DNA from: Zootoca vivipara
Lineage: Eukaryota
DNA: 64,000 nt
NCBI RefSeq assembly: GCF_963506605.1
Contig: NC_083284.1
Location: 10,602,001-10,666,000 of the forward strand
Direction of reading: 5' to 3'
Positions 4,569 to 26,988 of this stretch are shown here, one piece after another. How positions within the stretch are numbered: the stretch's first letter is position 1; each line of letters opens with the position of its first letter. The notes beneath the pieces were generated by a model. The model saw only the letters and a list, made by a program, of their open reading frames with translations. It searched no databases and was not told the origin of the DNA. A program made the translations under genes and the position numbers.

Positions 4569-5248
4569 TTGAAGACTAACGTGTTGCAATGATGGCCAAG
4601 CTACAACCTCTCTCATTGCCTGCTGGCATGTTAAGTCTCTTGGCTGGGAGGGATTTTAAAAATAATAACAAACAGAGAAGCCTGAAGTAATTACTGTACT
4701 ACCTGCGGTCTGAAGTGGTGCAGCCTAGATTTATGGCCTTGTGGAAAACTAAACCTAAGATGCACATACAAAAAAGGAATGCAAAACAATTAGTTGGGTA
4801 GCCATAAGACCTTTTACTTCCTGAGGCAATTGTGAGCGCATACCGGTACTTGCACAGGGATAATCGGTAGTTCATGCAATCAATGTTAACCTCATGACTA
4901 GGTCTGCAAGGAAGGATTTTGTATTGTGCTTTATCACTAGTTTTATCCTGTGTATTTTTATATATTCTTGTTCCTGGCTTATATATTTTATATTAAGTTT
5001 AGAAATTCATTTAATAAATGAATTAAAACACAGACCCCTACAGCTTACACCTAGTTGTCTCTCTCTGAACTCTAACAATGCCTCTTGGTTGTCTGGATGA
5101 GGACCAGGGGGAGGTCTGTGAACGCACCTAGAAACTACCGTACTGTTCAAAAGCAAGATTTATATTTGTTTCTCTGCCCACTTTTGCCCTGACTCCACCC
5201 ACTATGGACATGTAGCCCTCACAAAGTTGCCTCATCCCACAGGGAATG

Positions 5249-5796: not shown

Positions 5797-5949
5797 TCAA
5801 GAGCCGAAGAATTTGAGGCCTCTGATTCTGAAGCCTCCTTCCACCGCTATGTATTCAAGGACCCTCAGGCCCAGCCGGTTGGGAAAGGAGATCTCGTGGT
5901 CGTCATCCAGGAGCACCTTGATCTCAGAATTAAGGAATGTGAAGGAAAG
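5797..5949 (-). CDS. Galectin copy A last exon
   Basis: ccttgcag|CTTTCC..., encoding FPNRLG and YIAVEG, with TGA at 5799-5797. Confidence 0.92.
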   Translation of the reverse strand, partial: LSFTFLNSEIKVLLDDDHEISFPNRLGLRVLEYIAVEGGFRIRGLKFFGS

Positions 5950-6802: not shown

Positions 6803-9482
6803 GTGCATAAGCATTGTAATAAAAAACACATGGAATTCATAAACATCCACAAAACAAAGGCAACGATCATTTCATTTGTGTGCCCTTGTAATTAAAAACG
6901 GGACACAATTGTTGTTCAGACAGGCCAGGTCCCCCAACACTGGCATTCCAGTTGTTCTGCACATATAAAAGGAACCCTCCTATGAAACATGGAGGCGTCC
7001 CACTTTCCCATGTGCCAGGGAAAGTAAACTTGTCCCCCCTCCAGATGTTGTTGGCCTGTTGGTTCCATCATGCCTCACCATCAGCCATGCTAGCCGAGGC
7101 TGATGGGATTATAATGTCATCTGGAAGGCTACAAATGCTTCTCCCTCGGAACAGGGAACTCCAGGAGAAGCTGCCTGCCTGCCTCCATTTGATCTACTGC
7201 TCAGACCTCACCTGAACTCTGCCGCCTTGCTGAAAAGGGAACTTGGAGATGCTCTCCTCCTCTTTCCCCCACACCCCATTTTCCTTGGAGTTGCACACAA
7301 TGGTGTTCGGACACTTCTGGCGGTGAAAGCGCGGATTGAAGTAAAGAACGAGGTTATCAGGGTCTTGGCCCAGTTTCACAACAAATCTTGAAGAGGTTTG
7401 AAAGTTATGAAAGAAACAAGAATAACAAACGTGAGAGGCTTACTGGACTTCAGCTGCAACAACAACAGGGCCCCTCTCCTAGGGGTTCACATGCTTGCCA
7501 TGCCGTAAGAATATTGAGAACATTCTTACATGCCACTTCAATCTCTGACGGGTGTGAGACTCCAGGGGTTTCAAGCGCTTACCAAGGGTTCGCGTTTCCT
7601 TCAGAATGAGGTGCAGCAGAGACTGAGGTTCACAGCATTAACACCCCCTTTGCTTCCCCCTTAGATGCAGCCTTGGATTCAAGCAGAAATCAGGCATGGC
7701 TCTGGCTTCCCTGGCTTCCCAGCTTCTAGCTTCTAGGTCACATAACTCAACTCTCTCTCCCAGTCTTTGTCTTTGTAACTACCAGTGAGTTGAGTGGGGG
7801 GGGGGGAGCACCCATTTGACCTCTGGCACTGAGCCACTTCCTTTGCTACCTGAATGACCCATACTTTGGGCCATTAGGAATAAGCAGGAATCTCGCCTGG
7901 CTAGTCTAGGAATTGTATCCATGCTGGATCCAAGAAGTGGAACGCCCTCCCATCAGATGTCAAAGAGAAAAACAGCTACCAGATTTTTAGAAGACATCTG
8001 AAGGCAGCCCTGTTTAGGGAGGCTTTTAATGTTTAATAGATTATTTTATTTCATTTCTCTGTTGGAAGCCACCCAGAGTGGCTGGGGTATAAATAATATA
8101 TTATTATTATTATTATTATTAATTATTATTATTATTATTAGGGGACCCAGGCATATAGCCTAAAAAACCCACCTCAAATTCATATATTGTGCTGGATTTG
8201 GGCTTCATGAAAACACTTTAAAAATTAAAAATAAAGCAAGGTTGTAGTCCTCATGGTTGCAGAGATTCAGGAATTATCTACCTGGAGCTTGATATAGACC
8301 AATGATGTCTATATCAAGGATGGAGCCCAAGATCTGCATAATGTGTCTGCCAATCCCTGTGACTCTTAAATTACTTAACTCACAACAATATCCCACATTC
8401 CCCATTACGTAATTTACAACAGCCTTGTAAGGAAGGCCAACATCCCCCTGCTGAAGATGAGGGGGCTACGGGAAGGCAACTTGGTTCATGGGACCAAGTA
8501 AGATACTGTATGCAGGTTCTAGACAAGGATGCTATAGGAAAGGCATCTTCAAATGTTTTGAAGGGCTTGCCATACTGATGGAGCAAGTTTATTTTGTTGC
8601 TGGCTACTGCATTCCGTAACCTGGTACCCTCCAGATGTTTTGGAAACTCCCTTCGGCCCCAGCCAGCTGGTAGGAACAAAGCCAAGGAAGAGGATTTCAC
8701 CTACACATTAGCACAGGGGGTGGGGCACCTGTTTAAGCCCAGTGGGGAGGTGCTTTGCATTCCTTTCTAGGTAACATGGCAGTCGCAAGCAGTGCCAGAG
8801 GCAGAAGAGGGTAGGCAAATACATTTTACTTTTGTACAATAGGGCATTTTCTCCATACACAGCCCTCTTGCAATCTCTCTCCTAATTTACTCTCCATTTT
8901 AAGGGTGTGGGCTGTAGTAGGAAATCAGGTAAAAAAAATGAGAGGATCTGTGTCCTACATCCTGCCTTGTTTAGAACATGATTCGCCCTTCCATGCCCTA
9001 TTTTAATAAATCCGGTGCTTCGGCATTCAGCTTAAGATCTTGGTACAGGTTTTAATTGCTATGTCCTGGACGCATGACCTGGGCAGAGCTTGCCCGGCAT
9101 ACGCAAGAGATTCTCCGTTCTCAGAAACACGTTTAAGGGCTATGTACACAGTGTGCCTACACCCGAGTTCCCGGAGACATGTGATATTCCCCCCCTTCCC
9201 TACTCACTCTTTGGCATCTGGCAGGATCCTCCCTTTCACCTGGACCATGTCTCCATGCAGGGCTTGGAAATCAGTGGCAACCACTCCCTAGGGGAAGGGG
9301 AAACAAGAGACATTTTTTCAGCCGCAGTGTTGGCAGGATGAGATTCAGGAGGGGAAGGGGAAGGGAAATTAATGTGCTTACCGTTTTTGTCCTGGAAATA
9401 AGGTGAGCCCAGGGACCACTGAGCAGACTTGGCGGTTTCTGCAAAAGGAGGACAGAGGGAAGCCGTCGACAGAGACAGACAC

Positions 9483-9543
<61 letters not shown>

Positions 9544-10593
9544 GACAGACAAGAGCACAGATAACATTGGTTAGTGCAGTGCTAGGGAACCTGTGCAGCA
9601 ATTTCAACACTCAGGTTAATAGAATGAGCTGCTTCCAGGAACTCTGCTTTAGGGCAGCCTACAAATACAGTGGTGCCTCGCAAGACGAATTTAATTCGTT
9701 CCGCGAGTCAATTCGTTTTGCAAAAAAATCCGTCTTGCGAATCGCGGTTACCCATAGGAATGCATTGAAAGTTCTTTTTTTGCCCATAGGAACACATTAA
9801 TTAAATTTCAATGCAATCCTATGGGACACCGTGATTCGCCAGACGAATTTTTCGCAAAACGAATTCGTCTTGCGAGTCACCATCAGATCGCAAGACGCAT
9901 TCGTCTTGCAAAAAAATCGTCTTGCAGGGCATTCGTCTTGCGAGGTACCACCATACTGTAAGTGAACCATAGAATAGATGACTTAGCCACATTCACTCAA
10001 ATACAGATGTTTTCAAGCCCTTCTCAGATCCCACATTTTCCTGCTAGGTCCTTTATTTATATAATTTCTATCTTGCCCCAGTGAGCAGCTGACCTCCTGC
10101 ATTTTGCAGTAGCTGCTGCTTCTGGACCTACCTTAGAAGCAGTATAATGAAATTTGGAACATATTCACAAACATATGGTTATAAATAACCCTACATGTAT
10201 TTGGATAACAACGACATTTATATGCCTGTATTCTAGAGAAGCACTTGTGGAATTGTAGTTGATTGCATACATAGTGATATAATACACCTTCTTTTTCTCT
10301 TTATGACTTTTTATTTTTACTTTATTTTGCTCAATTGAAATGCTCTCGATACAAAATTAAAATAAAAGAACCCAGAAGCAGCAAGAGAAACAGAGGCAAG
10401 AAGTCAGAGATACTGTATAAGAGTTAGCAGCTGAGATACAATCATGCTCCTCCCTAGAGAGAACAAGCCTCCTATTAACCCTTCTAATTTTCCAGCCTAG
10501 TTTTATTGCACTTGGTGGTATTACAGCTTCAATAGCAACTGCCTCCTATACTAACAACCACAAAAATGGACATACAAGACTCACGGACTGCAT
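5797..10593 (-). CDS. Galectin-1-like (16 kDa beta-galactoside-binding lectin/CG-16-like) copy A, 5 exons, 157 aa predicted
   Basis: Manual splice join(10593..10585, 9438..9382, 9287..9208, 7386..7212, 5949..5797), all GT-AG and in frame: MQS|KPPSLLSGPWAHLISRTKT|GVVATDFQALHGDMVQVKGRILPDAKE|FVVKLGQDPDNLVLYFNPRFHRQKCPNTIVCNSKENGVWGKEEESISKFPFQQGGRVQ|LSFTFLNSEIKVLLDDDHEISFPNRLGLRVLEYIAVEGGFRIRGLKFFGS*. Galectin motifs FNPRF, IVCNS, WGxE, FPF, FPNRLG are present, and intron phases match galectin-1. Confidence 0.9.
6268..6588 (+). mobile_element. tRNA-derived squamate SINE (Squam3-like) with (CTT)n tail
   Basis: TGGTGTAGTGGTT/GGTTCG boxes and a long TTC tail at 6491-6588. Confidence 0.75.
7212..7386 (-). 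CDS. Galectin copy A CRD core exon (175 nt)
   Basis: ttcaag|ATTT...GTTCAG|gtgag, encoding LYFNPRF, IVCNS, WGKE, FPFQQG. Confidence 0.93.
7935..8140 (+). mobile_element. L2 LINE 3' end
   Basis: TGGAACGCCCTCCC...GAAGACATCTGAAGGCAGCCCTG with (ATT)n tail. Same family at ~35160-35500 and ~48505-49170. Confidence 0.7.
9208..9287 (-). CDS. Galectin copy A 80-nt exon
   Basis: ttcccctag|GGAGTG...AAAGA|gtgagt, encoding GVVATDFQALHGDMVQVKGRILPDAK. Confidence 0.9.
9382..9438 (-). CDS. Galectin copy A extra 57-nt exon (KPPSLLSGPWAHLISRTKT)
   Basis: cctccttttgcag|AAA...ACG|gtaagc, phase 0-0, no stop. Same length and position as the exon in copy B. Confidence 0.7.
9468..9552. repeat. (AGAC)n microsatellite
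   Basis: Directly visible. Confidence 0.95.
9668..9958. mobile_element. Tc1/mariner-type MITE
   Basis: CAGTGGTGCCTCGC...GCGAGGTACCAC TIRs flanked by TA. Confidence 0.8.
10585..10593 (-). CDS. Galectin copy A exon 1 (MQS)
   Basis: ATGCAGTCC|GTGAGT. A 9-nt coding first exon as in galectin-1, paralogous to 1502-1510 and 24845-24853. Confidence 0.8.
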
Positions 10594-10664
10594 AATGATC
10601 TCTTCCAAGGGTGCAGCCAAAGAACCAAAACTTTATTTCTTCCAACCTCTGCGAATGAAGCCCC

Positions 10665-10810
10665 ACTTAAATAGCTGAGGCTTGTTTTCAAGGTCCTTTT
10701 AAACCGCATCACGTGATAAAAAGGGTTTGCAGTGAGTGGAGGGTCTGCTCCTCTCTCTAGCATTGCAAGGTGGAGAAAATCAGAGTCAATAGGCTAAACA
10801 GCTGGCCTGT
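10665..10810 (-). promoter_or_regulatory. Proximal promoter of galectin copy A
   Basis: TATTTAAG (~10666-10673), E-box CACGTG 10710-10715 and the shared AAAAAGGGT block. Confidence 0.55.
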
Positions 10811-10827
10811 TTCTGACGACTGGGAAC

Positions 10828-11227
10828 CGGTGCCGGATTTACGTATAAGCTAAACAAGCTATAGCTTAGGGCCCCACTCTCTTTGGGGGGGGGGGGGCAA
10901 ACAATTTAAAGGGGGAAAAACTGGGTGTACATTTCCAAAATATAAGAAAAAAACAAATAAAATGGCTTTAGATACCTATTANNNNNNNNNNNNNNNNNNN
11001 NNNNNNNNNNNNNNNNNNNNNNNNNNNNNNNNNNNNNNNNNNNNNNNNNNNNNNNNNNNNNNNNNNNNNNNNNNNNNNNNNNNNNNNNNNNNNNNNNNNN
11101 NNNNNNNNNNNNNNNNGAAAAACCAGCAACAATTTGTTGTTGACATATAAAGCTGGACATATAAAGGGCTCCATTACCTTCAGTAGCTTAGGGCCTAAAT
11201 CTGACCCTGACCCTAAATCTGACCCTG
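10828..11227. mobile_element. hAT-type MITE (spans assembly gap 10982-11116)
   Basis: 8-bp TSD CTGGGAAC on both sides and imperfect TIRs. Confidence 0.75.
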
Positions 11228-11769
11228 CTGGGAACACACCTGATAAGCTCAAACAACTGGTGCTGTTTCTTTACGCCAGCCTAGTACCTCCAGATCAGGC
11301 ACCCCAAAACTTCGGCCCTCCAGATGTTTTGGACTACAATTCCCATCTTCCCTGACCACTGGTCCTGTTAGCTAGGGATCATGGGCAGGGCCGGTGCTAG
11401 GGCTTTTTGCACCCTAGGCAAAACACCTTTTGGCGCCCCCGGCACATGAGTCAGGACGCGTGCGTCGTGCGTCATGACGCATTGCTGACGCCCCTGCGTT
11501 CCCTCCATAGGCAGGAGGAGCGCAAGCCAAAAGAAGAGTGAGCGGTGGAGGTAGCAGCAGCGCCCATAGCTGAAGGCTCAAGGGCGTAGCCAGGATCAAA
11601 ACTAGGGGGGGGGGCAAGCCATGATCATTTAGGGGCGGGGCCACAAAGTGGGAACGTGGGCGGGGCTACAGGGCCAGCTGGCCTGACGACATCGTGGTGG
11701 TGGCAGCGGCGGCAGCGGCCACCTTGTGCTTCTGGGGCTGGCAACGGCGGCGGCTACCCTGCTTGGCTG

Positions 11770-13340
11770 GAGAGGACGGGAGGGTCGGGCAGGCAAGAGG
11801 GGGTGACAGGGTGGGCGAGGGCAAGGCAAGGCACGGCCGCAGTCATGACGGCTCCAAGGCGTTGCTGCATATCAGCATAATATTTCAACCATGTTGTGGG
11901 TTCAAGCCCCACCTTAGGAAAAAATTCCTGCATTGCAGGGGGTTGGACTAGATGACCCTTGTGGTCCCTTCCGACTACAATTCTATGATTCTATTGATAT
12001 ATTGCCATAGCATATGCATCATTCTGCTTTCTTGAATTGTCCTACTCCTAGGCATAGCAGCCAACTCCTAGAGGCCTAGGTGCCTCCCCCCCCCCAATTA
12101 CTAGTAAATACCGTATGTGAAAGAGTCATCCCCCCATGTTGATGGGCTTTCTATGTGGGGCTTATCTGCCCCCCCCCCATATTTTATTAAGAATGGAAGA
12201 GGGAGGGAAGGAAGGAAGAAATAGAGAGAGGGGTAACTCATATTTGTGGGTGCCTCTGGGTGACGCTGTGATGCTGGAACTCTGCAGCAAGAGGACGGGA
12301 GGGTCGGGCAGGCGAGAGGGGGTGGCAGGGCAGATGAGGGCGAGGGAAGGCACGGCCGCAGTCACGACAGCTCCGAGGCGTTGCTGCATATCAGCATAAT
12401 ATTTCAACCATGTTGTGGGTTCAAGCCCCACCTTAGGAAAAAATTCCTGCATTGCAGGGGGTTGGACTAGATGACCCTTGTGGTCCCTTCCGACAACAAT
12501 TCTATGATTCCATTGATATATTACCATAGCATATGCATCATTCTGCTTTCTTGAATTGTCCTACTCCTAGGCATAGCAGCCAAATCCTAGAGGCCTAGGT
12601 GCCTCTCCCCCCCCCCAATTACTGGTAAATACCGTATTTGAAAGAGTCACCCCCCCCATTTTGATGGGCTTTCTATGTGGGGCTTATCTGCCCCCCCCAG
12701 TATTTTATTAAGGATGGAAGAGGGAGGGAAGGAAGGAATAATAGAGAGAGGGATACCTCATATTTGTGGGTGTCTCTGGGTGATGCTGTGAAGCTGGAAC
12801 TCTGCAGCAAGAGGATGGGAGGGTCGGGCAGGGGAGAGGGGGTGGCAGGGCAGGCGAGGGCGAGGCAAGACAGGGCCGCAGTCTTGATGGCTCCGAGGCG
12901 TTGCTGCATATCAGCATAATATTTCAACCATGTTGTGGGTTCAAGCCCCACATTGGGGAAAAATTCCTGCATTGCAGGGGGTTGGACTAGATGACCCTTG
13001 TGGTCCCTTCCGACTACAATTCCATGATTCTATTGATATATTACCATAGCATATGCATGATTCTGCTTTCTTGAATTGTCCTAGGCATAGCAGCCAACTC
13101 CTAGAGGCCTAGGTGCCTTCCCCCCCAAAAAAGAAATTACTGGTAAATACTGTATTTTAAAGAGTCCTCCCCCCCCCATTTTGATGGGCTTTCTATGTGG
13201 GGCTTATCTGCCCCCCCCCCCCAGTATTTTATTGAGGATGGAAGAGGGAGGAAAGGAAGGAAGAAATAGAGAGAGGGATAACTCACATTTGTGGGTGCCT
13301 CTGGGTGACGCTGTGATGCTAGAACTCTGCAGCAAGAGGA
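11770..13340. repeat. Tandem triplication of a ~520-bp unit
   Basis: GTTGCTGCATATCAGC at ~11861/12380/12900 and TTGATGGGCTTTC at ~12139/12661/13181. Confidence 0.9.
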
Positions 13341-13400
13341 AGATACCGGTACACCTGTACAGGAGCCTTGTAAGCAGCTTTCTCTCTGCTTGATTTACAG

Positions 13401-13736
13401 CAGGCACGTCCAACAGGTAGATTGTGATCTACCAGTAGATCACTGGATGTCTGTGGTAGATCACTGCTAGATCACTGGCACCCCTAAAAAAAGCTCACCC
13501 AAATTTTTCCTCCTCCCTAAAAAAAGCTGAACTATGACCTGAAGCCCTAAACAATAATGGGCCTGCCTCCCTCCTAAAAGAAGCTCAACAAGTTTGACCT
13601 AAACCCCCCAAAACAGGGCTTCCCTTCCTTAAAGAAACTCAACAGCTTTGACCTGAACCCCCCAAAAGGGGGTAGATCACTCCCAGTTTTTAACTCTGTG
13701 AGTAGATCAGAGTCTCTTGGGAGGTGGCCACCCCTG
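13401..13736. mobile_element. hAT-type MITE
   Basis: CAGG...CCTG ends with TSD ATTTACAG. Confidence 0.8.
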
Positions 13737-15376
13737 ATTTACAGTATACAGATGCAGGAGGAGGGGCAGACTGGAACACCAATGCTTTTTATAAACATCA
13801 CTGTGTCTATCAAAGGTCCAGCCCCCCCCCCCTTCTTATTCACTTCCTTTTAGCCTTGCAGGGCCACCTTAGTCAAATTGAATCCTCTGCACCCTCATTA
13901 AATCGCCAATAGAACTGTTAATGCGATCCCTGAATGCCCATTAACAACTCCCACTGAATAACAATAGGGTGAATAGGGTGGACCTTGCCTGAAGGGATAT
14001 TCTGCTCCATTGTCTTAACTGCTTAAGTACTGGTAGCCACTTTGCTTTATTTATTTGATGTGTTTTTGTTACAGCTGTGTTCCCGCCCCCAGCAAGTGGA
14101 GAGCTGCTCTTGCTAAAGCAAAGCCCTTTCCACTTCAGTTTTTGGAGGGGCAAAGTATTGGTTATGGTCTGTAAAATACAATAATTTTTTGCTTCTAGGG
14201 GGGGCAGCTGCCCCCTCCTGCCCCCCCTGTCTACACCCATGTGAAGGCTTCAGCTACGGGCGCTGCCGCCACCACCACTCACTCGCTGCAGCACTCAGGA
14301 GCTCACAGCGTCCCTTCCATAGGTGGGAGGAGCGCGAGCGAGCGCTGTGGGAGGGCGGTGGTGGTGTGGGGGTTTTGCGGGGCAGGCTGCCCAACGCCCC
14401 CTCCATTTATGCACTCTAGGCGATTGCCTAGTTTGCCTAAATGGACGCACCGGCCTTGATCATGGGAGTTGTAGGCCAAAACATCTGGAGGGCCACAGTT
14501 TGGGATGCCTGCTCCAGATGTTTGAGAATACGGCTTCCATCAGCCTGAGACCTCACCTGTGCTCAGGTGAGGTTGATGGGAGTTGGATTCTGAAACCAAT
14601 GGAGGGCACACTGTTGGCCAACAGCGCCTTATGCAATTTAAATCAACAGCCTCCTGGCTGGTAACCATTCAGACATTTGTTCATTCTCCCTCCCTGCCTT
14701 TGATCTGGATTTTGGATGCCACACAAGCAGAAAAGCAGGCCAGCCGACAACTGAGCCAATGATAGGAAAGAGCTGAGATGCCCATTGCTTTGATTGGTCT
14801 TCAGTGTGGAAGGGATGGAGCACGGGACTGCTTCGTGGCTGAGTGAGGATTTGAACCCAGGGCCCTCCTGTTCTAGCGCTGGCACTGTTGTGAGTTTGTG
14901 AGGGGCCAGATCCCCCCTAAATTCCTGGGTCTGATAAAAGCTAGAATGAATCAGTGCTTGTCGGGTTAAGCTGAAAGTTAGACCCAGCTTTCCGTGTCCA
15001 CCTGGGAGAGGAGCCATCAGGAAGAACCATCAAGGGGTCATTACTGAAGTGGCCAAGTCATGGACCTAGTGAAACAGAGAGAGAAGCCGTCAGCAAGGCT
15101 ATGTGCTCTGAGTAGTTAGCAAAACACAATGCCAGAGCAGAGAGAGAGAAGTCCCAGGTTGGCAGTTTGGATAGCAAACGGGAGTAAAGTGTCCTTTTTG
15201 CAAGCTGGGTTGGGGGGCAGGGAGAAGGGGGACTGTCTGTTTTGTGCTGCACAGAGGGTCAGACACAATGTTTGGGGTCTCTTGGAATCTGAGACGGCAG
15301 CACTGGAAGGAACAGGACCCTCCTGGGATGCGAATGCCATCTAGACCAATCTCGCCATCTAGACCCAGGTTGTATA

Positions 15377-15844
15377 CAGTGATACCTTGGTTTACAACCA
15401 TAATCCGTTCTGGAGGTCCAGTTGTAAACCAAAACAGGTTGTAACCCAAGGCGTGCTTTCACCAATGGGGCCTCCAAAAATAATAATGGTTGTAATAAAA
15501 AAAATGGGTTGTAATCCAAAAAAAGGGACACACACCTCAGGGTTTGACGCGGTTGTAATCCAAAACGGTTGTAATCCAAAATGGTTGCAAGCAAACCATT
15601 TTGCACGGTACACAGTGGTACCTTGGTTTAAGAACAGCGCTGTTTACGGACTATTCAGTTTACGAACTCCGCAGACTATTCAGTTTGCGAACTTTACCTT
15701 GGTCTAAGAATGGAAGCCAAACGGTGGAATGGCACTGGTGGCACGGGAGGCCTCATTAGGGAAAGCATGCCTTGGTTTAAGAACAGTTTTGGTTTAAGAA
15801 AGGACTTCTGGAACGGATTAAGTTCATAAACCGAGGCACCACTG
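15377..15844. mobile_element. Two adjacent Tc1/mariner-type MITEs
   Basis: CAGTGATACCTTGG / CAGTGGTACCTTGG starts and a CCGAGGCACCACTG end. Confidence 0.7.
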
Positions 15845-16494
15845 TTTGTGTAAATAAACCGTATAACATAAAGACACCACAGTCTCCGCTGAGCCTCCTG
15901 GTCCAAAAGGAAACACAGACCCCCCCCCTGGATCGCACAAGGCTTGGAGATCGAGGTGGTGAGTGGGTGGGTGGGGAACAATATTTAAAGGCACCATGCA
16001 GTAGACTTTTCCTACGTTGCTTTGTATCCATTTGGATGGTGGTAGATCAGTTCTGGGATAACCATACAGGAAGGCGGATATATTTGCTGTATTTCATTTT
16101 TAAAAAAAATAGATTTAAAGCTACTTGTGCTTTTGGCATCTCCAGTGAACTAATGTGCTTTGCCTGGAGTCTATTTTCAACCATCCACCCTTCCACTATT
16201 TTGTTATTATAAATAATTACATTCTGGCCCACTCTCCTTCCAAGAAACTCAGGGTGGCAGGCATGGCTCCCCCTCATAGTCTCATGACAGCCCTGGCAGC
16301 TCAGCTCAGCTGAGGAATTGTGACTGGCGATGCATGTCTAGGGCTTGGAACTGGGGTCTCGCTAGTTCTAGTCTGACACTACTCTAACCACTACACTGCA
16401 CTAACTTCCTGCCAACGTTGCTGTTCCCACAGAGCTGAGCACTGGGAAGATTTGGAAATGTCTCCTCCCACACCAGCTGGGGGAAGCCGCATGC

Positions 16495-16983
16495 AAGAAG
16501 GATACTGACAAGCTGGAACATGTCCAGAAGAGGGCAACCAAAATGGTCAAAGGCCTGGAAACGATGCCTTATGAGGAACGGCTTAGGGAGCTGGGTATGT
16601 TAGCCTGGAGAAGAGAAGGTTAAGGGGTGATATGATAGCCATGTTCAAATATATGAAAGGATGTCATATAGAGGAGGGAGAAAGGTTGTTTTCTGTTGCT
16701 CCAGAGAAGCGGACACGGAGCAATGGATTCAAACTACAAGAAAGAAGATTCCACCTAAACATTAGGAAGAACTTCCTGACAGTAAGAGCTGTTCGGCAGT
16801 GGAATTTGCTACCAAGGAGTGTGGTGGAGTCGTCTCCTTTGCAGGTGTTTAAGCAGAGGCTTGACAGCCATATGTCAAGAATGCTTTGATGGTGTTTCCT
16901 GCTCAGCAGAAGGTTGGACTGGATGGCCCTTGTGGTCTCTTCCAACTCTACAATTCTATGATTTTATGATTCTATGATTCTAT
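16495..16983 (+). mobile_element. CR1 LINE 3' end
   Basis: RT C-terminus ([21 protein letters not shown]) and (TTCTATGA)n tail. Confidence 0.9.
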
Positions 16984-17084
16984 GCAGACAGGCTGCTTGC
17001 ACAAGTAGAACCGACAGCCTGTCTTCTCAGCCCTTGTCCATCCTGGCTCATAAAAGCGAGCTGGGCAGAGCTGGGCAATGGGCT

Positions 17085-17310
17085 CCGTGGGGTGGCGAAT
17101 GCTTCCCTCTGTGAGGGAGTCTTCCTGGAACCTCTTAAAGAAGCAGTTATTAAACCACCTTTGGACCCGGCCACTATGGCTAACTATTGCCCAGTCTCCA
17201 ATATTCCATTCCTGGGCAACGCAGTCAAGCAGAGTGTCGTGGAACAACTCCAGGCATGTCTGGAGGATGCAGACCATTTAGACCTCTTCCATTCAAGTTT
17301 CAGGCCCCAA
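17085..17310 (+). mobile_element. L2 LINE RT fragment
   Basis: LKEAVIKP...NYCPVSNIPFLG, a decayed NYRPVSNLPFL. Confidence 0.65.
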
Positions 17311-18170
17311 AGTGTCTGTTTTGGGTGATGTCACATTACCTCATATAGCATCCTCTCACTCATGCCCACAGCTACTGTGTCATTGGGGCAGGGGTCGCGA
17401 GGCGGCGCACATAATGTGGCTTCTGAATATACCGTACTTTCCTTCCCCACCTCCCAGGAGATCTTCCTCAGTGGCCTTTCCTGGTAAGTGGTTGCTTATT
17501 ATTTTGTCCGTCTAGATTACTTGTTGTTTAGTCGTTTATAGTCCTGTCCGACTTTTCGTGAACCCATGGACCAGCACTTACCTGCCCAAAATGTGCAAAG
17601 AATTACCATGATCTTGCTTCAAAACATTGACCTGTGCATCATGCCTTTGAGACTGCAACCCTTTTGTGGGCGGACACCTCCCCTGTACTGTTTTAATCCT
17701 GTGATTTAAACTGCCAGCCAGGACAACCCATCAGAATAGGTACCAAACAAAAGAGGCTTTCATATCATTTTGACACAGGCAACTGTAGAAGAGGACACCA
17801 GAATTTCCCCTTTTGCATGTTTAGACCTTTAAACCTCCCCCTATAAATAAATTCAGACAAAACTCAAATTTTGGTTTGGTTTTTGGCAGAATTTAGGCCA
17901 CAACTTTATTGATTACATCGGGTGAGTGGTTGCACCTGATGTAATCAATAAAGGGCACCAGCCTAGGTCAGGCTAGGGTGAACACCTGGAATGGCGGAAA
18001 GCTGGGAACAGGCTATGTCCACCACCCAGATGTCCCCCTGGACTCGGGCATGGGACCAAACCATTGAGTCCCTGGATTCCTTTAACGGAATACCCTTCAC
18101 ATAGGGATGGCGAGAGCGTTCCCCCATCCCTTTCACCTGAACCAGAGCCCATTCACAACCTTACAAGTTG

Positions 18171-18488
18171 CATAGCTGCCAAGTCTCCCGTTTTCCCCGG
18201 GAAATCCCCGTTTTTCCAGCTGTTTTTTCCCTGGTTTATTCTGGCACGGCGGCCATTTTGGTACTGGGCGGAGCATGCTCAGAAGCGACTTTTGATGCTG
18301 CTCTGCCCAGTTCCAAAATGGCTGCAGTGCGACTTCTGGCGCAGCGGCCATTTTGGAACTAGGCAAAGCAGCATCAAAAGTCACTTCTGAGCATGCTCCG
18401 CCCAGTTCCAAAATGGCAGCAGCGCTACTTCCGGCCTGCTATTTCCAGCCCGGTCCCTTATTTCTCTGACAGCAACTTGGCAGGTATG
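18171..18488. mobile_element. hAT-type MITE (CATAGCTGCCAAG family)
   Basis: TIR CATAGCTGCCAAGT/ACTTGGCAGGTATG with TSD ACAAGTTG. Confidence 0.85.
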
Positions 18489-19057
18489 ACAAGTTGTGAC
18501 GATTTGCTACGCAGCAGGCGAAACCCAAGTGGCACCAGCCAATCAGCCAAGTGGGGAAAATTCCTGCTGTGCCCCTGTGCCAATGACAGACGACACACGA
18601 CGGCATAGCAAGGTCAAGCGCGCAAGCCCTAGAAGTAGGGAGAGGTGGGCAGGTGTTCCGATGCACTGACCAGAAAAGGAAGCTCTGAGTAACATGCATG
18701 GGCATATATAGGTCCCTTGATTGGTTTGGCTAGCGTCCCATTGGCCTGATTAACCCAGCATCAAGGGACCTACCAATAGGGTGTTGTGGCTATCCAATCG
18801 TACCCACCCACAACACAGGGTTCGGTTGCCAGGTTGCACCGCAACATGTGCCCTCTTTGAGGACATGATTTCCCCACAGCAAATGCAGGACAGCAGGATG
18901 TACCAATTTTTATAAAATACAGGTGGGGAACCTCAGTCCAGTGACCCAAATGTGGTCCCCAAGCCTCCTTTGTCTGGCCCTCCATATGTTTCCTAGCCAC
19001 ACACCCCTATTTCACATCTTCAAGTGTTCTTGCCCAATGCCTCCTGCTTGTCTAGAG

Positions 19058-19545
19058 CAGAGGATTTCAACCTTTGAGTCCACGGCTCCCTTGACCAACT
19101 ACATTCTTTCTGTGGCACCCCTGTGGGGCTCGGAAATTGGGCGGCGCTGGGACCCAAAATGGAGCCTCCCTGGCAGGTAGGAAATCTGGGGGGTTTACGG
19201 GATTCTTTCCAATCCGGGCTGCCAGCGGGAAACAGTTTAAAATACAGGGGTTTCCCGCGAAAAACGGGAGACTTGACAGCTATGGTCTAGATCAGGCACC
19301 CCCAAACTGCGGCCCTCCAGATGTTTTGGCCTACAACTCCCATGATCCCTAGCTAAGAGGATCAGTGGTCAGGGGTGATGGGAATTGTAGTCCCAAACAT
19401 CTGGAGGGCCGAAGTTTGGGGGTGCCTGGTCTAGACCAGCCTTTTTTAACCTTGGCTTAGTTCCCATCACCCTTGGTTCTGCTAGCTAGGGATGATGGGA
19501 TTTGTAGCCCAATAACAGCCGGGGACCCAAGGTTGAGAGAGGCTG
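19058..19545. mobile_element. Stack of hAT (Charlie-like) MITEs
   Basis: Elements separated by repeated GTCTAGAN target sites at 19050, 19285, 19429 and 19546. Confidence 0.8.
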
Positions 19546-19767
19546 GTCTAGAGGGAGATGTGAGTGGGGCCTTTGAGTGTGCCTAGAATATACCCTACTG
19601 TTCAAATGCAATATTTCTATTTGTTGCCCTGCCTCTGGCTCCACCCACCATGGTCATGTGAGCCTCAGAAGGCTCCCCAGCAGGTAATGAGGTTCCCGGA
19701 CTCAAAAATATTTCCCCTCACCGTTATAAACTAAAACCACGCAGGCAGTTTTTGAAGAACAGATGAG

Positions 19768-19773
19768 TTTATT
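19768..19773 (-). terminator. Poly(A) signal AATAAA, galectin copy B
   Basis: AATAAA about 38 nt after the stop. Confidence 0.7.
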
Positions 19774-19810
19774 CAGACTTGTTGCAGGACTGCAGGGACA
19801 CAGAACGAAA

Positions 19811-19957
19811 CTAGAGAAATTTGAGGGTTCTGATTCTGAAGTCTCCTTCCACCCTGATATAGCCGATGGTCTTCAGGCCCAGCTGGTTGGGAAAGGTGAA
19901 CTCATGACCCTCTGCCAGCTTCACCTTGATCTCCGCAGAAAGAAAAGTGAAGGAAAG
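19811..19957 (-). CDS. Galectin copy B last exon
   Basis: ttcttgcag|CTTTCC..., encoding FPNQLG and VEGDF, ending in TAG. Confidence 0.92.
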   Translation of the reverse strand, partial: LSFTFLSAEIKVKLAEGHEFTFPNQLGLKTIGYIRVEGDFRIRTLKFL

Positions 19958-22900
19958 CTGCAAGAAGCAGGAGGAGGAGGAGTCATGAGAAAACCAGGAC
20001 ACTAAACGCTTTACATGCCCTGAAAGACTAAAAGGAATGGCAACTACTGCCTAGACATTGGGAGTTCAGCATTTCCATTTCCTGTCTGAGGCTACTTCTA
20101 CCCAAGTGCTTACATTTCAGCTGATCAGGAGGCACTTCAGAGCCAGGGGCGTAGCAAGGCGCCGCAACACCCGGGGCGGCATATTGCCATGTTCCGGGGG
20201 CGCGCGCAGCGTCGCTATGTAACGACACATGCTACTTCTAAACAGAGTGCCCAGGCTCCAGGTAGATAACCCACTGGCGTGGCACGCCCACCACACCAGT
20301 GGGCTATCTGCCTGGAGCCTGGGTGCTCCGTTTAGGCTCCATTTTGAAGTCACGGGGGTGCAGTACCCTCTCTGTTGTACGCATGCACAGCATCCCGCTG
20401 CACACGCATGCTAGGTAGAGGAGGATCGCGCGCCTCCCGCGACTTCTAAACAGAGCGCCCAGGCTCAGGCAAGGTGCCGATCCCGGGGTGGGGGCGCGGC
20501 CCCGAGTGACACCCCCTCCAGGGCAGTACCCAGGGTGGACCGCCCCCCCACCCGCTTGCCCCGCCCCTGTTCAGAGCCCAAGGACCAGAGTTGTCTTAAT
20601 CCATGGGTAGGCAAACTTAGGCCTGGGGGCAGGATCCAGCCCAATTGCCTTCTAAACCCAGCCCACAGATGGTCCGGGAATGAGCGTGTTTTTACATGAG
20701 TAGAATGTGTTCTTTTATCTAAAATGCATCTCTGGGTTATTTTGGGAGCACAGGAATTCGTTCATTTTCCCCCCAAAATATAGTCTGGCCCCCCACAAGG
20801 TCTGAGGGACAGTGGGCCGGCCCCCTGCTGAAAAAGTTTGCTGACCCCCTGGACTTAATCCCTCATGTTAAAAGCAGGATAAGATGCGGAGAAGGGTGTA
20901 CATGCTAGTTTTCTGTAGGCAAAGGTGAACTGGCCTGTGCACTTATTTTTTTTTTTTTAAAGCACAGAAGTCTTATTCAGTCAAGCCACTCTCCAAACAC
21001 CTGCATTCCAGTTCTATACATATAAATTTAATTTTTTTGAAAGAAGGAAGGTCCTCCTTCCACACCCTCTAAGGCAGCCATCCCCAAACTCAGCCCTCCA
21101 GATGTTTTGGGACTACAACTCCCATCTTCCCTGACCACTGGTCCTGTTAGCTAGGGATGATGGGAGTTGTAGTCCCAAAACATCTGGAGGGCCGAGTTTG
21201 GGGGTGCCTGCTCTAAGGGAAAGATACCTGGGGTCTTCCAGATGGTCAGGTATTGCTCCCATGGCTGACCATTGGCCATACTGGCTGGGGTCGATAGGAG
21301 TACAAGCATTGCATGACCTCTGCAGAGAAGCCACTCCCCTACCTCCTCCATTCGCACACAGACCTTCGATAAGACTGCCACACCCTCACCTGAACTTTGG
21401 CACCTTGCTCAAAAGGGAAATCGGTGATTCTCTGTTCTTTCCCCCATACGCCGTTCTGCAAGGAGTTGCACACGATGGTGTTCAAAATGGTGTTGTCGTC
21501 CGTCTGGTAGTCAAAGCGGGGGTTGAAGTGAAGGACGAGGTTGTCGCGATCCTGGCCCAGATTCACGACAAAACTTGAAGAGGATGGAAGTTATGGAAAA
21601 CAAAGAGCGTGGAGGTTAAGGCTTCCTGGACCTCTGTATAAACAAACAACAACTACGCAGCCCCCCTCTTGGGCATCTACCTGTATGCCAAACAGTGAGA
21701 GCATTTAGTGCTATATTTGGGCTTCATCATCATCATCAATTATTTATACCCCGCCCATCTGGCTGGGTTTCCCCAGCCACTCTGGGCGGCTTCCAACAAA
21801 ATATTAAAATACAATAATGTATTAAACATTAAAAGCTTCCCTAAACAGGGCTGCCTTCATGAGAACAGTAGCTTTAAAAATAAATAAAATAATAAAATTA
21901 AAATAAAGCACGGTTCTAGCGCTCATGGTTGCAAGAGTATCACACGGGAACTAGCAACCTAGAGCAGCATATAGACCAGGGTTTCCCAAACTTGCGTCTC
22001 CAGCTGTTTTTGGACTACAGTTATCATCCATGACCATAGGGTCCTGCTAGTTAGGGACGATGGGAGTTGTAGTCCAAAAACAGCTGGAGACCCAAATTTT
22101 GGAAACCATGATATAGACCAGGCATGTCAAACCTGCGGCCCTCCAGATGTTTTGGACTACAATTCCCATCTTCCCCAACCACTGGTCCTGCTAGCTAGGG
22201 ATCATGGGAGTTGTAGGCCAAAACATCTGGAGGGCTGCAGGTTTGACATGCCTGATATAGACTGTTGGGGGGGCAGGATGTACCCCAACATTTCCCCTTC
22301 CCCCCATGGGTCATTTGAGAATCACCGCAGGTCCACATAGAGAACTTGGTGATTTTCCTCTGCCTGTTGTACTGCAACAGGTGCTGTAGGATTTTGAATT
22401 ACGTTTTTACAGACAGGCTATAGGCCAACCGAATGAAGCTCACAGATCAGAGTTTGGAGAGCCCTGTCGTGCAACAGGAGTCACAAAGTGTGCAACATAG
22501 GATTCTCCACACTCCATCCTAGCTAGCATGAAAAATTAAGAGTTCAATGGAACATTCCAACCAGGCAAGAACACTCTGCAGGCATCAGGGCCAGTGAGGG
22601 ATTCAGCCTGGGGAGAGGGCCAAGGGCCAAAGAACGGTGTGGAGGGCCACTTCTCATCCTCACCCCCGCATTAGCAAAACTATCCAAGGCTGCATTTGCG
22701 CTCCTGTCGACTCCTGCTGGAGCTTTAAATCTGCATCCGCATGATGTCATCTAGAGTAACTGCATTATTTTGAGAACCAGTGGGGAGTAGTGGTTAGAGC
22801 GCTGGACTTGCACCTCGGAGACCCAGGTTCAAATCCCTGCTCAGCTATGAAACTCTATGGGGCATCCCCCCTCCCCCGCTGTCACTCAGCCTAACCTACC

Positions 22901-24853
22901 TTGCAGGGTTGTTGGAAGGATAAAAAATGGGTGGTTGTTTTTTTTTAAAAAAATTCCTTCCAGTAGCACCTTAAAGGTAAAGGTAAAGGGACCCCTGACC
23001 ATTACGTCCAGTCGTGACCGACTCTGGGGTTGCACGCTCATCTCGCATTATTAGCAGAGGGAGCCGGCGTACAGCTTCCAGGTCATGTGGCCAGCATGAC
23101 AAAGCCGCTTCTGACAAACCAGAGCAGCGCATGGAAACGCCGTTTACCTTCCCACTGTAGCGGTTCCTATTTATCTACTTGCATTTTGACATGCTTTCGA
23201 ACTGCTAGGTTGGCAGGAGCTGGGACCAAGCAATGGGAGCTCACCCCGTCACAGGGATTCAAACCGTTGACCTTCTGATCAGCAAGCCCTAGGCTCAGTG
23301 GTTTAACCCACAGCGCCACCTGGGTCCCCCCAGTAGCACCTTAGAGACCAACTAAGTTTGTCATTGGTATGAGGTTTCGTGTGCATGCCTCGTGTGTGTA
23401 TCTGAAGAAGTGTGCATGCACACGAAAGCTCATACCAATGACAAACTTAGTTGGTCTCTAAGGTGCTACTGGAAGGAATTTTTTTATTTTGTTTCGACTA
23501 CGGCAGACCAACACGGCTACCTACCTGTAACTAAAATGGGGAAAGTGTGCATGCCACCTTTCACTCTCTGGAGGAAAGGTGGGATAGAAATATAATAAAT
23601 TACAAACGGGTATCCTGTGTAACAGGCAACAGTTTGGTGCAGTTTTATAAAGACTGGAGTCCTTAAGGTGTTCCCAACTCATCTCTAGCCAAGCTACGAA
23701 CACCTTTGCATAGGAATTAGACATTTCTGCCCCATAAGTGCTCTCTGGTGTGTATACTAACTAACTGAAGCCATGCGGAAATGAACAGCTTCGGGGCCAA
23801 GCTGGGGAGATAGCAACTTCTCTGTACTCCAAAGCAGTAATATGAATGCACAAGAGTCTCAATACGCTTTCCTCCTTCCCAGCTTACTCTTTGGCATCCG
23901 ACGGGATCCTCCCTTTCAGTTGGACAGTCTCTCCATGCAGAAGGAGAAAATCCGTCGCAACCAGCCCCTAGAGAGGAGGGAAACACATCTTCAACTGCGG
24001 TGGTGGAATGGTGAGATTTAGGAGGGAAAGGGGCAAGAAAGTGAATGCTCTTACTTTCATTGGGTTGGAGTGAACCCGGGTCCATGGATCAATGAGGGCA
24101 CTTCCTAATACCTGTGGGACGGGACAAGAGGAAGGAGTCACCAATAAATCAATAGGCAGAAGCACTGAGCATTTCATTTGCTACAGCCAGTGTTGGGAAT
24201 CCAAGGGTTGTCAGATCTTTAGGACTAGCAGCCTGCTAGTCCCATATAGCAAGCAATTACTTCTCCCTCCTGCCATGTTATTCCCAGTAGCAACCTCCAA
24301 TTAAAAGTGCTGCATTCACTGACTCTTATAGGGAAGCCTAAAGACACTGCAAATAAATCGTTGTTGTTGTTTGCATACTCATGTTTCCAAGCCCTCTTCA
24401 AATCTTGCCTTTTCTGTGAAACCTCAACACCCATCCCTTCTACAAAGACTTTTTGAGTATGAACTGCATTGGCACACATTCGCCTCTTAAGTTACATTAC
24501 ACTCATCTCTCCCACGGGCAGACCTTTGATTGTAAGCTCTGCAGGGCAGAGACCATTCCCTCCCACCTTTATACTAGAAAGCACAACTGTATGGATAGCA
24601 CATCATTATTAACAGAGGACAGCCCTACTAACAATGCACCAAGAATAGGTTATCAAGAACCCCAAAGCAAGGGAAAGATAGAATGCAATAGTGACACATA
24701 CAAAATGTGCTTGTTTCCTAGCTGATACACCGCTTCCCCAAGAAACCTATTGATGCTTATAAGTTTCCGGCCTTGTTTAGGTCTTGCTGCTTGTAAAACA
24801 ATCTCAATCTCAGTAACCAAGGAGCAGCAATAAAGAGGACTCACGGGATCCAT
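19811..24853 (-). CDS. Galectin-1-like (16 kDa beta-galactoside-binding lectin/CG-16-like) copy B, 5 exons, 158 aa predicted
   Basis: join(24853..24845, 24111..24055, 23967..23888, 21573..21390, 19957..19811): MDP|VLGSALIDPWTRVHSNPMK|GLVATDFLLLHGETVQLKGRIPSDAKD|FVVNLGQDRDNLVLHFNPRFDYQTDDNTILNTIVCNSLQNGVWGKEQRITDFPFEQGAKVQ|LSFTFLSAEIKVKLAEGHEFTFPNQLGLKTIGYIRVEGDFRIRTLKFL*. Carries the full HxNxR...N...WGxExR signature. Confidence 0.92.
20144..20569. mobile_element. hAT-type MITE in copy B last intron
   Basis: CAGGGGCG...CGCCCCTG TIR with TSD TTCAGAGC. Confidence 0.8.
21390..21573 (-). CDS. Galectin copy B CRD core exon (184 nt)
   Basis: ttcaag|TTTT...GTTCAG|gtgag, encoding LHFNPRF, IVCNS, WGKEQR, FPF. 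Confidence 0.94.
21977..22254. mobile_element. Two tandem hAT MITEs sharing one target site
   Basis: ATATAGAC at 21969, 22111 and 22255. Confidence 0.85.
22974..23328 (-). mobile_element. Sauria SINE inserted in a Penelope terminal repeat
   Basis: Sauria consensus, (ACCTTT)n tail and TSD CCAGTAGCACCTTA. Confidence 0.9.
23329..23530 (+). mobile_element. Penelope-like element terminal inverted repeat
   Basis: Matches the Penelope 3' end at ~63470-63598, here arranged as a hairpin. Confidence 0.8.
23398..23435 (+). ncRNA. Minimal type I hammerhead ribozyme motif (Penelope-associated)
   Basis: GTAT-CTGAAGA-A-GTGTGCATGCACAC-GAAA-GCTC-ATAC. Confidence 0.65.
23888..23967 (-). CDS. Galectin copy B 80-nt exon
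   Basis: ctctctag|GGGCTG...AAAGA|gtaagc. Confidence 0.9.
24055..24111 (-). CDS. Galectin copy B extra 57-nt exon (VLGSALIDPWTRVHSNPMK)
   Basis: cttgtcccgtcccacag|GTA...ATGAAA|gtaaga, phase 0-0. Confidence 0.7.
24845..24853 (-). CDS. Galectin copy B exon 1 (MDP)
   Basis: gtcATGGATCCC|GTGAGT. Confidence 0.8.
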
Positions 24854-24965
24854 GACACAATCTTGCTCAGGTCCAGCAATGCCTTCTCCCTTCCAATCTC
24901 AGTTCTGTGCCTCAGCAAAAGAAGTACCAGCCAGCTACCTTGAAAAAAGAAAGTCCTCCCTGGTG

Positions 24966-25090
24966 CCTTTAAGTAGCTGGGGGGAAATGGACCACATGAC
25001 AAAAAGGGTCTGCTGTCACTGGAGCTCTGTAGAAATGCAAGGAGGAGGAAAATCAGGGTCAACAAGCAACACAGCTGGCCTGTTTTGAAT
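24966..25090 (-). promoter_or_regulatory. Proximal promoter of galectin copy B
   Basis: TACTTAAA (~24968-24975), E-box CACATG 24993-24998 and the shared TGACAAAAAGGGTCTGC block. Confidence 0.55.
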
Positions 25091-26988
25091 GCAGGAGAAC
25101 AGTGATTATTAACTCAAACAGCTGGTGCTATTTCTCCCCACTGCCCTTCACTCACCTGGTACCCTCCAGGTGCTTTGGCGGCTGCAGCTCCCATCAGCAT
25201 TAGAGCCCTCACCTGTGCAGGTTGGGGGTGATGATAGTTGTAGTCCAAAACATCTGGAGAGGACATCCTTGGCCCCACTCTTCCTCCAAGAAACCCAGGA
25301 TGGCATACATGGTTTCCTCTCATTCACATCACAGCATTAAGCCAGCAGGCAACTGATCCAATAGAAAACAAGGAATTCAGAGCAGGGTCTCCCAAACTTG
25401 GGCCTCCAGCTGTTTTTGGACTACAACTCCCATCATCCCTAGCTAGCAGGACCAATGGTTAGGGATGATGGGAATTGGACTCCGAAAACAGCTGGAGACC
25501 CAAGTTTGGGAAACACCCCGTTAAAACATTTTTATTCGTCTTCAGTGTGGAAGGGCTGGAGCAGGGGTCAGCAAACTTTTTCAGCAGGGGGCCGGTCCAC
25601 TGTCCCTCAGACCTTGTGGGGGGCCAGGCTATTGGGGAGGGGGGGTAGAACGAATTCCTATGTTCCACAAATAACCCAGAGATGCATTTTAAATAAAAGG
25701 ACACATTCTACTCATGTAAAAACACGCTGATTCCCGGACTGTCCGCAGGCCGGATTTAGAAGCTGACTGGGTCAGATCTGGCCCCGGGGCCTCAGTTTAC
25801 CTACCCATGGGCTGGAGAATAGAGCCTGGAATGTGGCTGAGTCCTGGGGGATTTGAACCCAGGACTCACCTGTCCCAGCCTGACATGACTCTAACCACTA
25901 CCCCACATTGGTTTCCAACGAACAAATATATTGTGACATAAAATTTTATAAATATAAAGATCATAAATACAAACATTTCTATGTATACAGATTTTTTTGG
26001 GGAAAGGATAATATTGGGTTGCATCAAATGTTAGTCCAATGCTTAGGGTGGGGGGTGAATTGAAATTAATCGACATTGTTGACAGGTCCATTAAGTTCTC
26101 CTCGTAGTTGGAGACAGACTCTCTACATAGACCCCGTGCAAGAGGCAGCAGCAAAAAAAAAGTGTCAGCAGCAATCTTGCAGCAATGTGAATCAGCTTGA
26201 AAGGCATCTCCAAAGATTCGCAGAGACCATTAAAAATCCCTCCGCCCTCGTGGGGTGCTGTTGCATCAGCTGTTGCAGATTCTGGAGCTGCCAATTTTTC
26301 CAATCAGGTTCTGCGGCTGTGCCTTTAACAGAAGCGGTTAAATGCAGCAACTGGGAGGTCAAAATTGCTTATCTCCCTGCAGTGGAAAGCTTCACCTACT
26401 CATTCATATAGTTCAAGGCATTTTTAAAGACACGTTTCCCAAAACAGTAGTAGAGTCACAAGTATCCTTTCCTAGTAAACATTTGTTTGCAATTTTGTTG
26501 CTTGCATATGCATTCACAAAGAAACTAACTGTCCCAATTCTGCAAAGGAGAAAATCATTCCTATCCTCTTCCCTCAAAGATGGACAGGTGAATTATTACT
26601 TTAGATTAGCCCTTTCAGGGACAGACACCTCCCCTGCACAACTTTGGTTACCTATAATGCTCTACTGAAACAGGGACAGGTGCAGATCAAACTCAAGAGC
26701 TGTGTTTTTGTATTTTTAGCTGTAAGCTGTCTGAAAGAAAAGGCAGGATAGAAATGATATTATGGTTATTACGATTATATATATATCAATAAAAGCTCTG
26801 CAGAGTTCTGCAGAACTTCCTTTGACTTTCTGGGATCTAATTGCACAGACCAAATCCCTTCTGTTTATTCATTTAAAAGTTTGTCCCTGTTATTAATTGT
26901 GCGAGCAGCTGAAGGGAACGAAGAGATGCTTATGGCAGAATGAAGACCCTTGTTTCCATCTGAGGCTGGTGGCATCACATTAGGTGAC

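Follow-up and report, generated by a model that had tools for sequence, protein, structure and literature searches.

In a 64,000-nucleotide (nt) window of the Zootoca vivipara genome (contig NC_083284.1, positions 10,602,001 to 10,666,000 of the forward strand; the window is this whole stretch, and all coordinates below count from its first base), two tandemly duplicated galectin genes, here called gene A and gene B, lie on the minus strand, and both carry an extra segment of 57 nt between the first two exons of an otherwise canonical galectin-1-type gene. We consider it likely that this segment is a genuine, conserved exon that codes for protein, the second of five, in galectin-1A-like genes that resemble chicken CG-16, and that belong to a group seen only in lacertid lizards and Rhineura. 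Taken separately, we think it very probable that the exon is real and codes for protein, and probable that it is a cassette. When included, it would insert 19 residues directly before the first beta-strand, yielding a galectin-1-fold domain with a flexible tail of some 22 residues at its N-terminus, and when skipped, an ordinary prototype galectin would be made. The tailed form is presumably made in Zootoca.

The arrangement of the two genes can be followed in the DNA of the window itself (the canonical exons are numbered 1 to 4 here, leaving the extra exon unnumbered). In gene A, the coding part of exon 1 (10585-10593; ATG CAG TCC, or MQS, followed by a GTGAGT donor) is succeeded by the extra exon at 9382-9438 (KPPSLLSGPWAHLISRTKT), a mini-intron of 94 nt (9288-9381), the canonical 80-nt exon 2 (9208-9287; GVVATDF...PDAK), a 175-nt exon 3 holding the core of the sugar-binding domain (7212-7386), and the coding part of exon 4 (5797-5949), which ends in a TGA stop codon and has an AATAAA at 5770-5765. 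Gene B repeats this order, with the coding part of exon 1 at 24845-24853 (ATG GAT CCC, or MDP, again followed by GTGAGT), the extra exon at 24055-24111 (VLGSALIDPWTRVHSNPMK, ending in ATG AAA), a mini-intron of 87 nt (23968-24054), the canonical 80-nt exon 2 (23888-23967; GLVATDF...SDAK), a 184-nt exon 3 (21390-21573) and the coding part of exon 4 (19811-19957), with a TAG stop codon and an AATAAA at 19773-19768. All eight introns of the two genes are of the GT-AG type and all exon frames are open. The extra exon is bordered by ...ctccttttgcag|AAA and ACG|gtaagc in gene A, and by ...gtcccacag|GTA and AAA|gtaaga in gene B. As such, the preliminary description of this stretch, which reported stop-free 57-nt segments of phase 0-0, each between a polypyrimidine-CAG acceptor and a GTAAG donor, is borne out to the base, and the distance of about 90 nt that it gave between segment and 80-nt exon measures 94 nt in gene A and 87 nt in gene B. 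Since both neighbours of the segment, exon 1 and the 80-nt exon, are in phase 0, its 57 nt would add exactly 19 residues if included, while skipping would leave an ordinary prototype galectin starting with MQS|GVVATDF... or MDP|GLVATDF.... The possibility that the gene B segment is a plain first exon, consisting of 5' untranslated region and ATG AAA, was dropped: a canonical exon 1 of ATG plus two codons with a GTGAGT donor is present upstream in both genes. A (GTCT)n microsatellite at 9470-9560 on the minus strand directly abuts the acceptor region of the gene A extra exon; the repeat is free of stop codons in the frame of that exon and is accompanied by an ATG at 9567-9565.

Aligned without gaps, the 57-nt segments of genes A and B share 29 of 57 nt, the same count as reported earlier, where base composition would predict 25% (P about 3.5e-5), and the other registers from -9 to +9 yield only 9 to 24 matches. 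In order to see how often such a segment would be encountered by chance, exon-like segments were counted that have at least 70% pyrimidines before the AG, a GTRAG donor, a length of 30-150 nt that is a multiple of three, and an open frame. On both strands of the window there are 18 of these, or about one per 7 kb of strand, and given this rarity, a pair of equal length at homologous places is more than chance would provide. The mini-intron that follows the segment is conserved as well, with 68 of 94 positions identical between A and B (72%) versus at most 62% for shuffled controls; as short stretches that have been shuffled already reach near 57% in gapped global alignment, this measure was used for the mini-intron only. 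The blastn alignment between the two genes starts exactly at the first base of the mini-intron, which is the donor of the segment, and continues through exon 2 at 73% identity, while most other intron sequence of the two genes does not align. We infer that the mini-intron of 87-94 nt is a candidate splicing-control region, through which inclusion of the exon may be regulated.

The exon readings of both genes coincide with public gene models. Exons were matched singly to database proteins. The translations of gene B are exact substrings of XP_060135107.1 (158 amino acids, aa) at residues 1, 4, 23, 50 and 111, the split codon GA|T giving D49, and those of gene A are exact substrings of XP_034967857.2 (157 aa) at residues 1, 4, 23, 50 and 108, with GA|A giving E49. 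In both proteins, exon 1 encodes residues 1-3 and the extra exon residues 4-22; the 80-nt exon of gene A encodes residues 23-48. RefSeq names both models ‘16 kDa beta-galactoside-binding lectin-like’, a generic name given to automatic predictions, and the tailed form is currently the sole model for each gene. Two superseded models read the 5’ part differently. XP_034967857.1 started gene A at a Met inside exon 2, and XP_034967858.1 gave gene B a first exon at 25266-25210 on the minus strand (MSSPDVLDYNYHHPQPAQ), joined to the acceptor that the 57-nt exon also uses; because several look-alike copies of this first exon occur in the window, it is probably derived from a repeat. The extra exon is already annotated in RefSeq for Zootoca vivipara and five other species and is therefore not novel at the sequence level, contrary to what the preliminary description implied. 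No paper on the 19-residue insert was found in the open-access literature, a scope that does not prove that none exists.

Searched without a profile against 1.84 billion representative proteins, exon 3 of gene B matched galectin-1-type proteins, and in two proteins of Rhineura floridana the match starts at residue 50 instead of residue 31. The 19-residue insert is present at the same place in gene models of Lacerta agilis (B-type XP_033016280.1 and A-type XP_033015469.1), Podarcis muralis (XP_028600607), P. raffonei (XP_053223376.1) and P. lilfordi (CAI5784795.1, where a B-type and an A-type gene are fused and both inserts are present), and in those of three Rhineura floridana genes. The P. 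lilfordi model (299 aa) consists of a B-type gene that is cut inside its last exon and fused to an A-type gene from the 57-nt exon of the latter onward, which is likely an annotation error. In all of ten gene copies from six species the insert is 19 residues long, with frame and core motif kept; its residues S4, P9 and W10 never vary, and hydrophobic residues occupy positions 5-6. Zootoca A has 17 of 19 insert residues in common with Lacerta A, 17/19 (and 23/26 in exon 2) with P. lilfordi A, and 14/19 (19/26 in exon 2) with the third Rhineura gene. For Zootoca B, identities with the lacertid B copies are 14-18 of 19 in the insert and 21-24 of 26 in exon 2, and with the first Rhineura gene 10/19 and 19/26. 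Judged by these identities, the insert appears about as constrained within orthologues as the neighbouring domain sequence, which would hardly be expected of intron sequence that evolves neutrally. The family of Rhineura and the lacertids split well over 100 million years ago.

Searches by shared words and cluster representatives among other squamates, turtles, birds and crocodilians did not find the 19-residue insert, all matches being either 134-135 aa long or carrying unrelated extensions, and a search with the first 48 residues of a tailed Rhineura protein returned its own cluster only. As far as these searches reach, the insert appears to be confined to lacertids and Rhineura, although this does not prove its absence elsewhere. 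In a maximum-likelihood tree of 27 proteins, built with whole proteins and then with only the part after exon 2, every insert-bearing gene falls within one clade (support 98/95 and 95/91, respectively). The sister group of this clade is made up of the canonical ‘16 kDa lectin’ genes of Zootoca, Lacerta and Rhineura, which encode 135 aa. Genes A and B group with proteins that RefSeq names ‘16 kDa beta-galactoside-binding lectin’, in a tree that was built without galectin-1B sequences. The earlier suggestions that these segments represent a real, possibly skippable exon, and that they define a lizard-specific subfamily of tailed galectins, have thus both gained support: the five-exon readings equal RefSeq proteins, the insert recurs in ten copies of six species, isoforms that skip it are annotated for two Rhineura genes, and the insert-bearing genes form one clade that is seen only in Lacertidae and Rhineura.

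Several observations do weigh against a conserved coding exon, and must be taken into account. The evidence from other species consists of predicted gene models only, and pipelines that reuse protein alignments can spread a model from one species to the next. Between A and B, the extra exon lacks a coding signature, as identities at the three codon positions are 11, 8 and 10 of 19, compared with 23, 23 and 16 of 27, 27 and 26 in exon 2; its peptides share only 5 of 19 residues, and it is less conserved than the adjacent mini-intron. It should be noted that the codon-position test between A and B is uninformative due to the age of the paralogues, and, on the identities at hand, that this comparison offers the weakest view of the conservation of the insert. 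Furthermore, two paralogue groups that are modelled without the insert nest inside the insert-bearing clade, and a tree forced to group the insert-bearing genes alone is mildly rejected (approximately unbiased (AU) test, p = 0.039), which suggests that the insert was either lost or left unannotated in those copies. Finally, RNA was checked for gene B only (19700-25699), using two contig sets and two raw RNA-seq runs from the same species, and the region 23700-25099, which covers exon 1, the extra exon and exon 2, has zero depth in all four. One low-depth contig lies on exon 4 of gene B, and has its end exactly at the acceptor at 19957. Given that the exons of gene B are silent in these four runs, they neither support nor refute inclusion of the extra exon. 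The RNA depth that is seen in and upstream of gene B piles up on interspersed repeats (20500-20900, 21100-21300, 21700-21900, 22100-22300, 22900-23700 and 25300-25700), and many of the joints and loose ends in these pile-ups come from other copies of the repeats.

How far do these points carry towards other explanations? Taken to the extreme, the segment would be a chance pseudo-exon within intron 1, unused in vivo, and copied between species by gene predictors. A stretch of 19 codons is often free of stops by chance (about 0.4 each by (61/64)^19), the RNA check of gene B is blank, and one P. lilfordi model that uses the segment is an obvious fusion of two genes. However, an open frame is only part of what was found: segments that pass simple splice and frame criteria occur just once per 7 kb or so of strand, and here the homologous place, identical length, open frame and strong splice sites coincide in ten copies of six species, with identity still reaching 14 of 19 residues in Rhineura, whose family split off well over 100 million years ago. 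The segment of gene A was moreover read straight from the DNA of the window, independent of any annotation, and we regard a chance pseudo-exon as the least credible of the explanations considered. Also highly improbable, in our view, is that the segment is transcribed without serving as a coding insert, with translation of gene B starting from the ATG in the segment's last two codons (MK|GLV...), and exon 1 and most of the segment being 5’ untranslated. The preliminary description had already pointed to this internal start; the gene B segment does end in ATG AAA|GT, and P. raffonei XP_053260344.1 starts with MN|GLVATDF at the same ATG inside the extra exon. The older model XP_034967858.1 likewise had a different, repeat-borne first exon before the same acceptor. 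The ATG is, however, a feature of lacertid B-type copies only, missing from gene A, all other A-type copies and the three Rhineura copies. It has a C at -3, whereas the exon-1 ATGs of both genes have a purine there, and the one upstream and in frame in gene B has a G at both -3 and +4. In addition, the 17 codons preceding the internal ATG are conserved as a peptide.

A further alternative accepts the exon as real, and takes it to be a minor, mostly skipped cassette, such that the main product of both genes is untailed (MQS|GVV..., MDP|GLV...), and the tailed form is rare and of little consequence. Leaving the segment out does not disturb the frame between exons 1 and 2, and in two Rhineura genes RefSeq lists insert-free isoforms (XP_061439328.1, MEP|GLVATQF...; XP_061439332.1, MAQ|GVVATEF...) beside the tailed ones. 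Related paralogues, such as XP_034967856.1, are also modelled without the insert, and a codon-position signature is missing between A and B. Conversely, a peptide that is as conserved as exon 2 in orthologues (14/19 versus 19/26), and of constant length in ten copies, is unexpected if it is hardly ever made, and the tailed form is the only current RefSeq model for both Zootoca genes. We think a minor cassette unlikely, and favour a conserved coding exon.

What protein would result from such an exon? The Pfam domain PF00337 (Gal-bind_lectin) is recognised in exon 3 of gene B with 54.8 bits and in that of gene A with 46.4 bits, and exon 4 of the two genes reaches 22.2 and 24.5 bits, respectively, all against a cut-off of 22.1. 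Sugar binding by galectins involves seven signature residues, which in the numbering of human galectin-1 are H44, N46, R48, N61, W68, E71 and R73. Gene B retains all seven (LHFNPRF, VCNS, WGKEQR). Gene A has two of the seven changed within an intact frame (LYFNPRF, WGKEEES), a Tyr replacing the conserved His and a Glu the last Arg, and this Glu is also found in the A-type copies of Lacerta and Podarcis. Being common to the lacertid A-type copies, it makes gene A look like a conserved, lectin-dead paralogue instead of a fresh pseudogene.

The best sequence match of gene B exon 3 in the PDB is chicken CG-16, and its predicted structure points in the same direction. An AlphaFold2 model of XP_060135107.1, based on an alignment of 30 sequences, has a mean predicted local distance difference test (pLDDT) score of 85, with a confident beta-sandwich from residue 23 onward, a domain that mostly exceeds 90, and residues 1-20 below 50, so that the N-terminal tail is predicted to be disordered. 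Foldseek places galectin-1 and CG-16 structures at the top of its matches to this model (E 1e-15), the best solved structure being chicken CG-16 (1qmj), with a template modelling (TM) score of 0.96 on the target and 52% identity. Modelled as a homodimer, the gene B protein reaches an interaction prediction score from aligned errors (ipSAE) of 0.72, versus 0.00 for the best of three controls, with at least 87% of contacts agreeing between runs and a partner pLDDT of at least 81; of the proteins solved as one-chain pairs, 21 of 30 came up to the mark for calling a homodimer, and of those solved as single chains, none of 23. The modelled interface comprises residues 22-30, 145, 147 and 152-157, which make up the first and last strands, and is the one known from galectin-1. 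It should be noted that the predictor may owe this pass to solved galectin-1 dimers that it has memorised. The model is in keeping with a tailed protein that may still form a galectin-1-type dimer, and the altered dimerisation that had been suggested finds no support in it, as the canonical interface is kept. Since the tail leaves the domain at the seam of N- and C-terminal strands that forms the dimer interface, the two tails of a dimer would come out beside one another.

Compared with chicken CG-16/galectin-1A (1qmj) and mammalian galectin-1, the gene B model has the same fold, and the dimer interface predicted for it is the same; gene B carries the same seven sugar-binding residues, and both lizard genes follow the same exon plan of ATG plus two codons, an 80-nt exon, an exon of the 172-nt class and a last exon, in the same phases. 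They differ from these galectins by the added 57-nt exon of phase 0-0, amounting to a 19-residue insert after residue 3, and gene A also by the loss of two sugar-binding residues (His to Tyr, and Arg to Glu). The four-exon plan of a prototype galectin-1 gene is consequently contained in both lizard genes without describing them in full, as the fifth exon of 57 nt lies between the first two of the four canonical exons, and skipping it restores the four-exon product. On the duplication of galectin-1 in sauropsids, Bhat et al. 2014 (PMC4224342) describe galectin-1A and galectin-1B, and four homologues in Anolis; the term ‘N-terminal’ was not found in their paper.

Single-domain galectins with a tail are already known, and by architecture the lizard genes would be a case in another lineage. 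Rat galectin-5 also has one sugar-binding domain after a short N-terminal extension, which is reported to switch between flexible and ordered states. The likeness to the lizard extension of 22 residues is in architecture only. Galectin-5 is set apart by reportedly being monomeric, and by a described N-terminal stretch (Ser2 to Asn12) that is shorter than the lizard tail. The lizard tail, on the other hand, is encoded by a cassette exon of its own in what is probably the galectin-1A lineage, where the tailed protein is still modelled as a dimer. Galectin-3, of the chimera type, likewise has a non-lectin tail before one sugar-binding domain; PMC6026190 describes it as an N-terminal segment with nine collagen-like repeats in a protein that is monomeric in solution, whereas the lizard tail has 22 residues without repeats.

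The tail may be looked at as a short binding or regulatory motif with the core S-x-L-x-x-P-W, and not as a part of the fold. In B-type copies this core reads S-x-L-x-D-P-W, and A-type copies have a distinct K-x-P-S-L-x-x-x-P-W-A-H-L-x-S-R-T-K-T. A bolder version, which we put forward tentatively and think unlikely, is that the tail is a splicing-controlled short linear motif that gives a galectin-1-fold protein a glycan-independent partner or tunes its dimer, gene A being a lectin-dead copy that is kept for the function of its tail. If the tailed form is indeed made, lacertids and worm lizards would possess a family-specific, frame-neutral cassette switch between an untailed and an N-tailed prototype galectin. 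With a tail positioned exactly at the dimer seam, this would constitute a natural experiment on how N-terminal extensions affect the behaviour of galectins, which has so far been studied in rat galectin-5 and galectin-3.

Upstream of both genes lies a promoter-like block on the minus strand, and both combine an E-box-like CAYGTG with a TATA-like element. In gene A the block spans 10710-10812, with the E-box CACGTG and the TATA-like TTTAAAAGG, and matches the gene B block at 25085-24993 with 74% identity over 104 nt in blastn. The latter block (24993-25085) contains CATGTG and the TATA-like CTTAAAGG. A role for either as promoter is putative. An assembly gap at 10982-11116 is intergenic, located 389 nt upstream of the start codon of gene A (10593) and 170 nt upstream of the block at 10812-10710; as neither gene model has an exon or intron that overlaps the gap, no reading frame spans it. 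Between this gap and gene B, at about 11757-13400 on the minus strand, there are at least three tandem copies of a unit of roughly 520-570 bp, each with a long open frame (NHRIVVGRDHKGHLVQPPAMQEFFP.VGLEPTTWLKYYADMQQRLGA...). Lastly, besides genes A and B, the only two for which recognisable exons were seen, a weak exon-2-like stretch, GLMATQLIVLH (E 0.36), is found at 4779-4811 on the minus strand, and may be the relic of a third copy of the gene.

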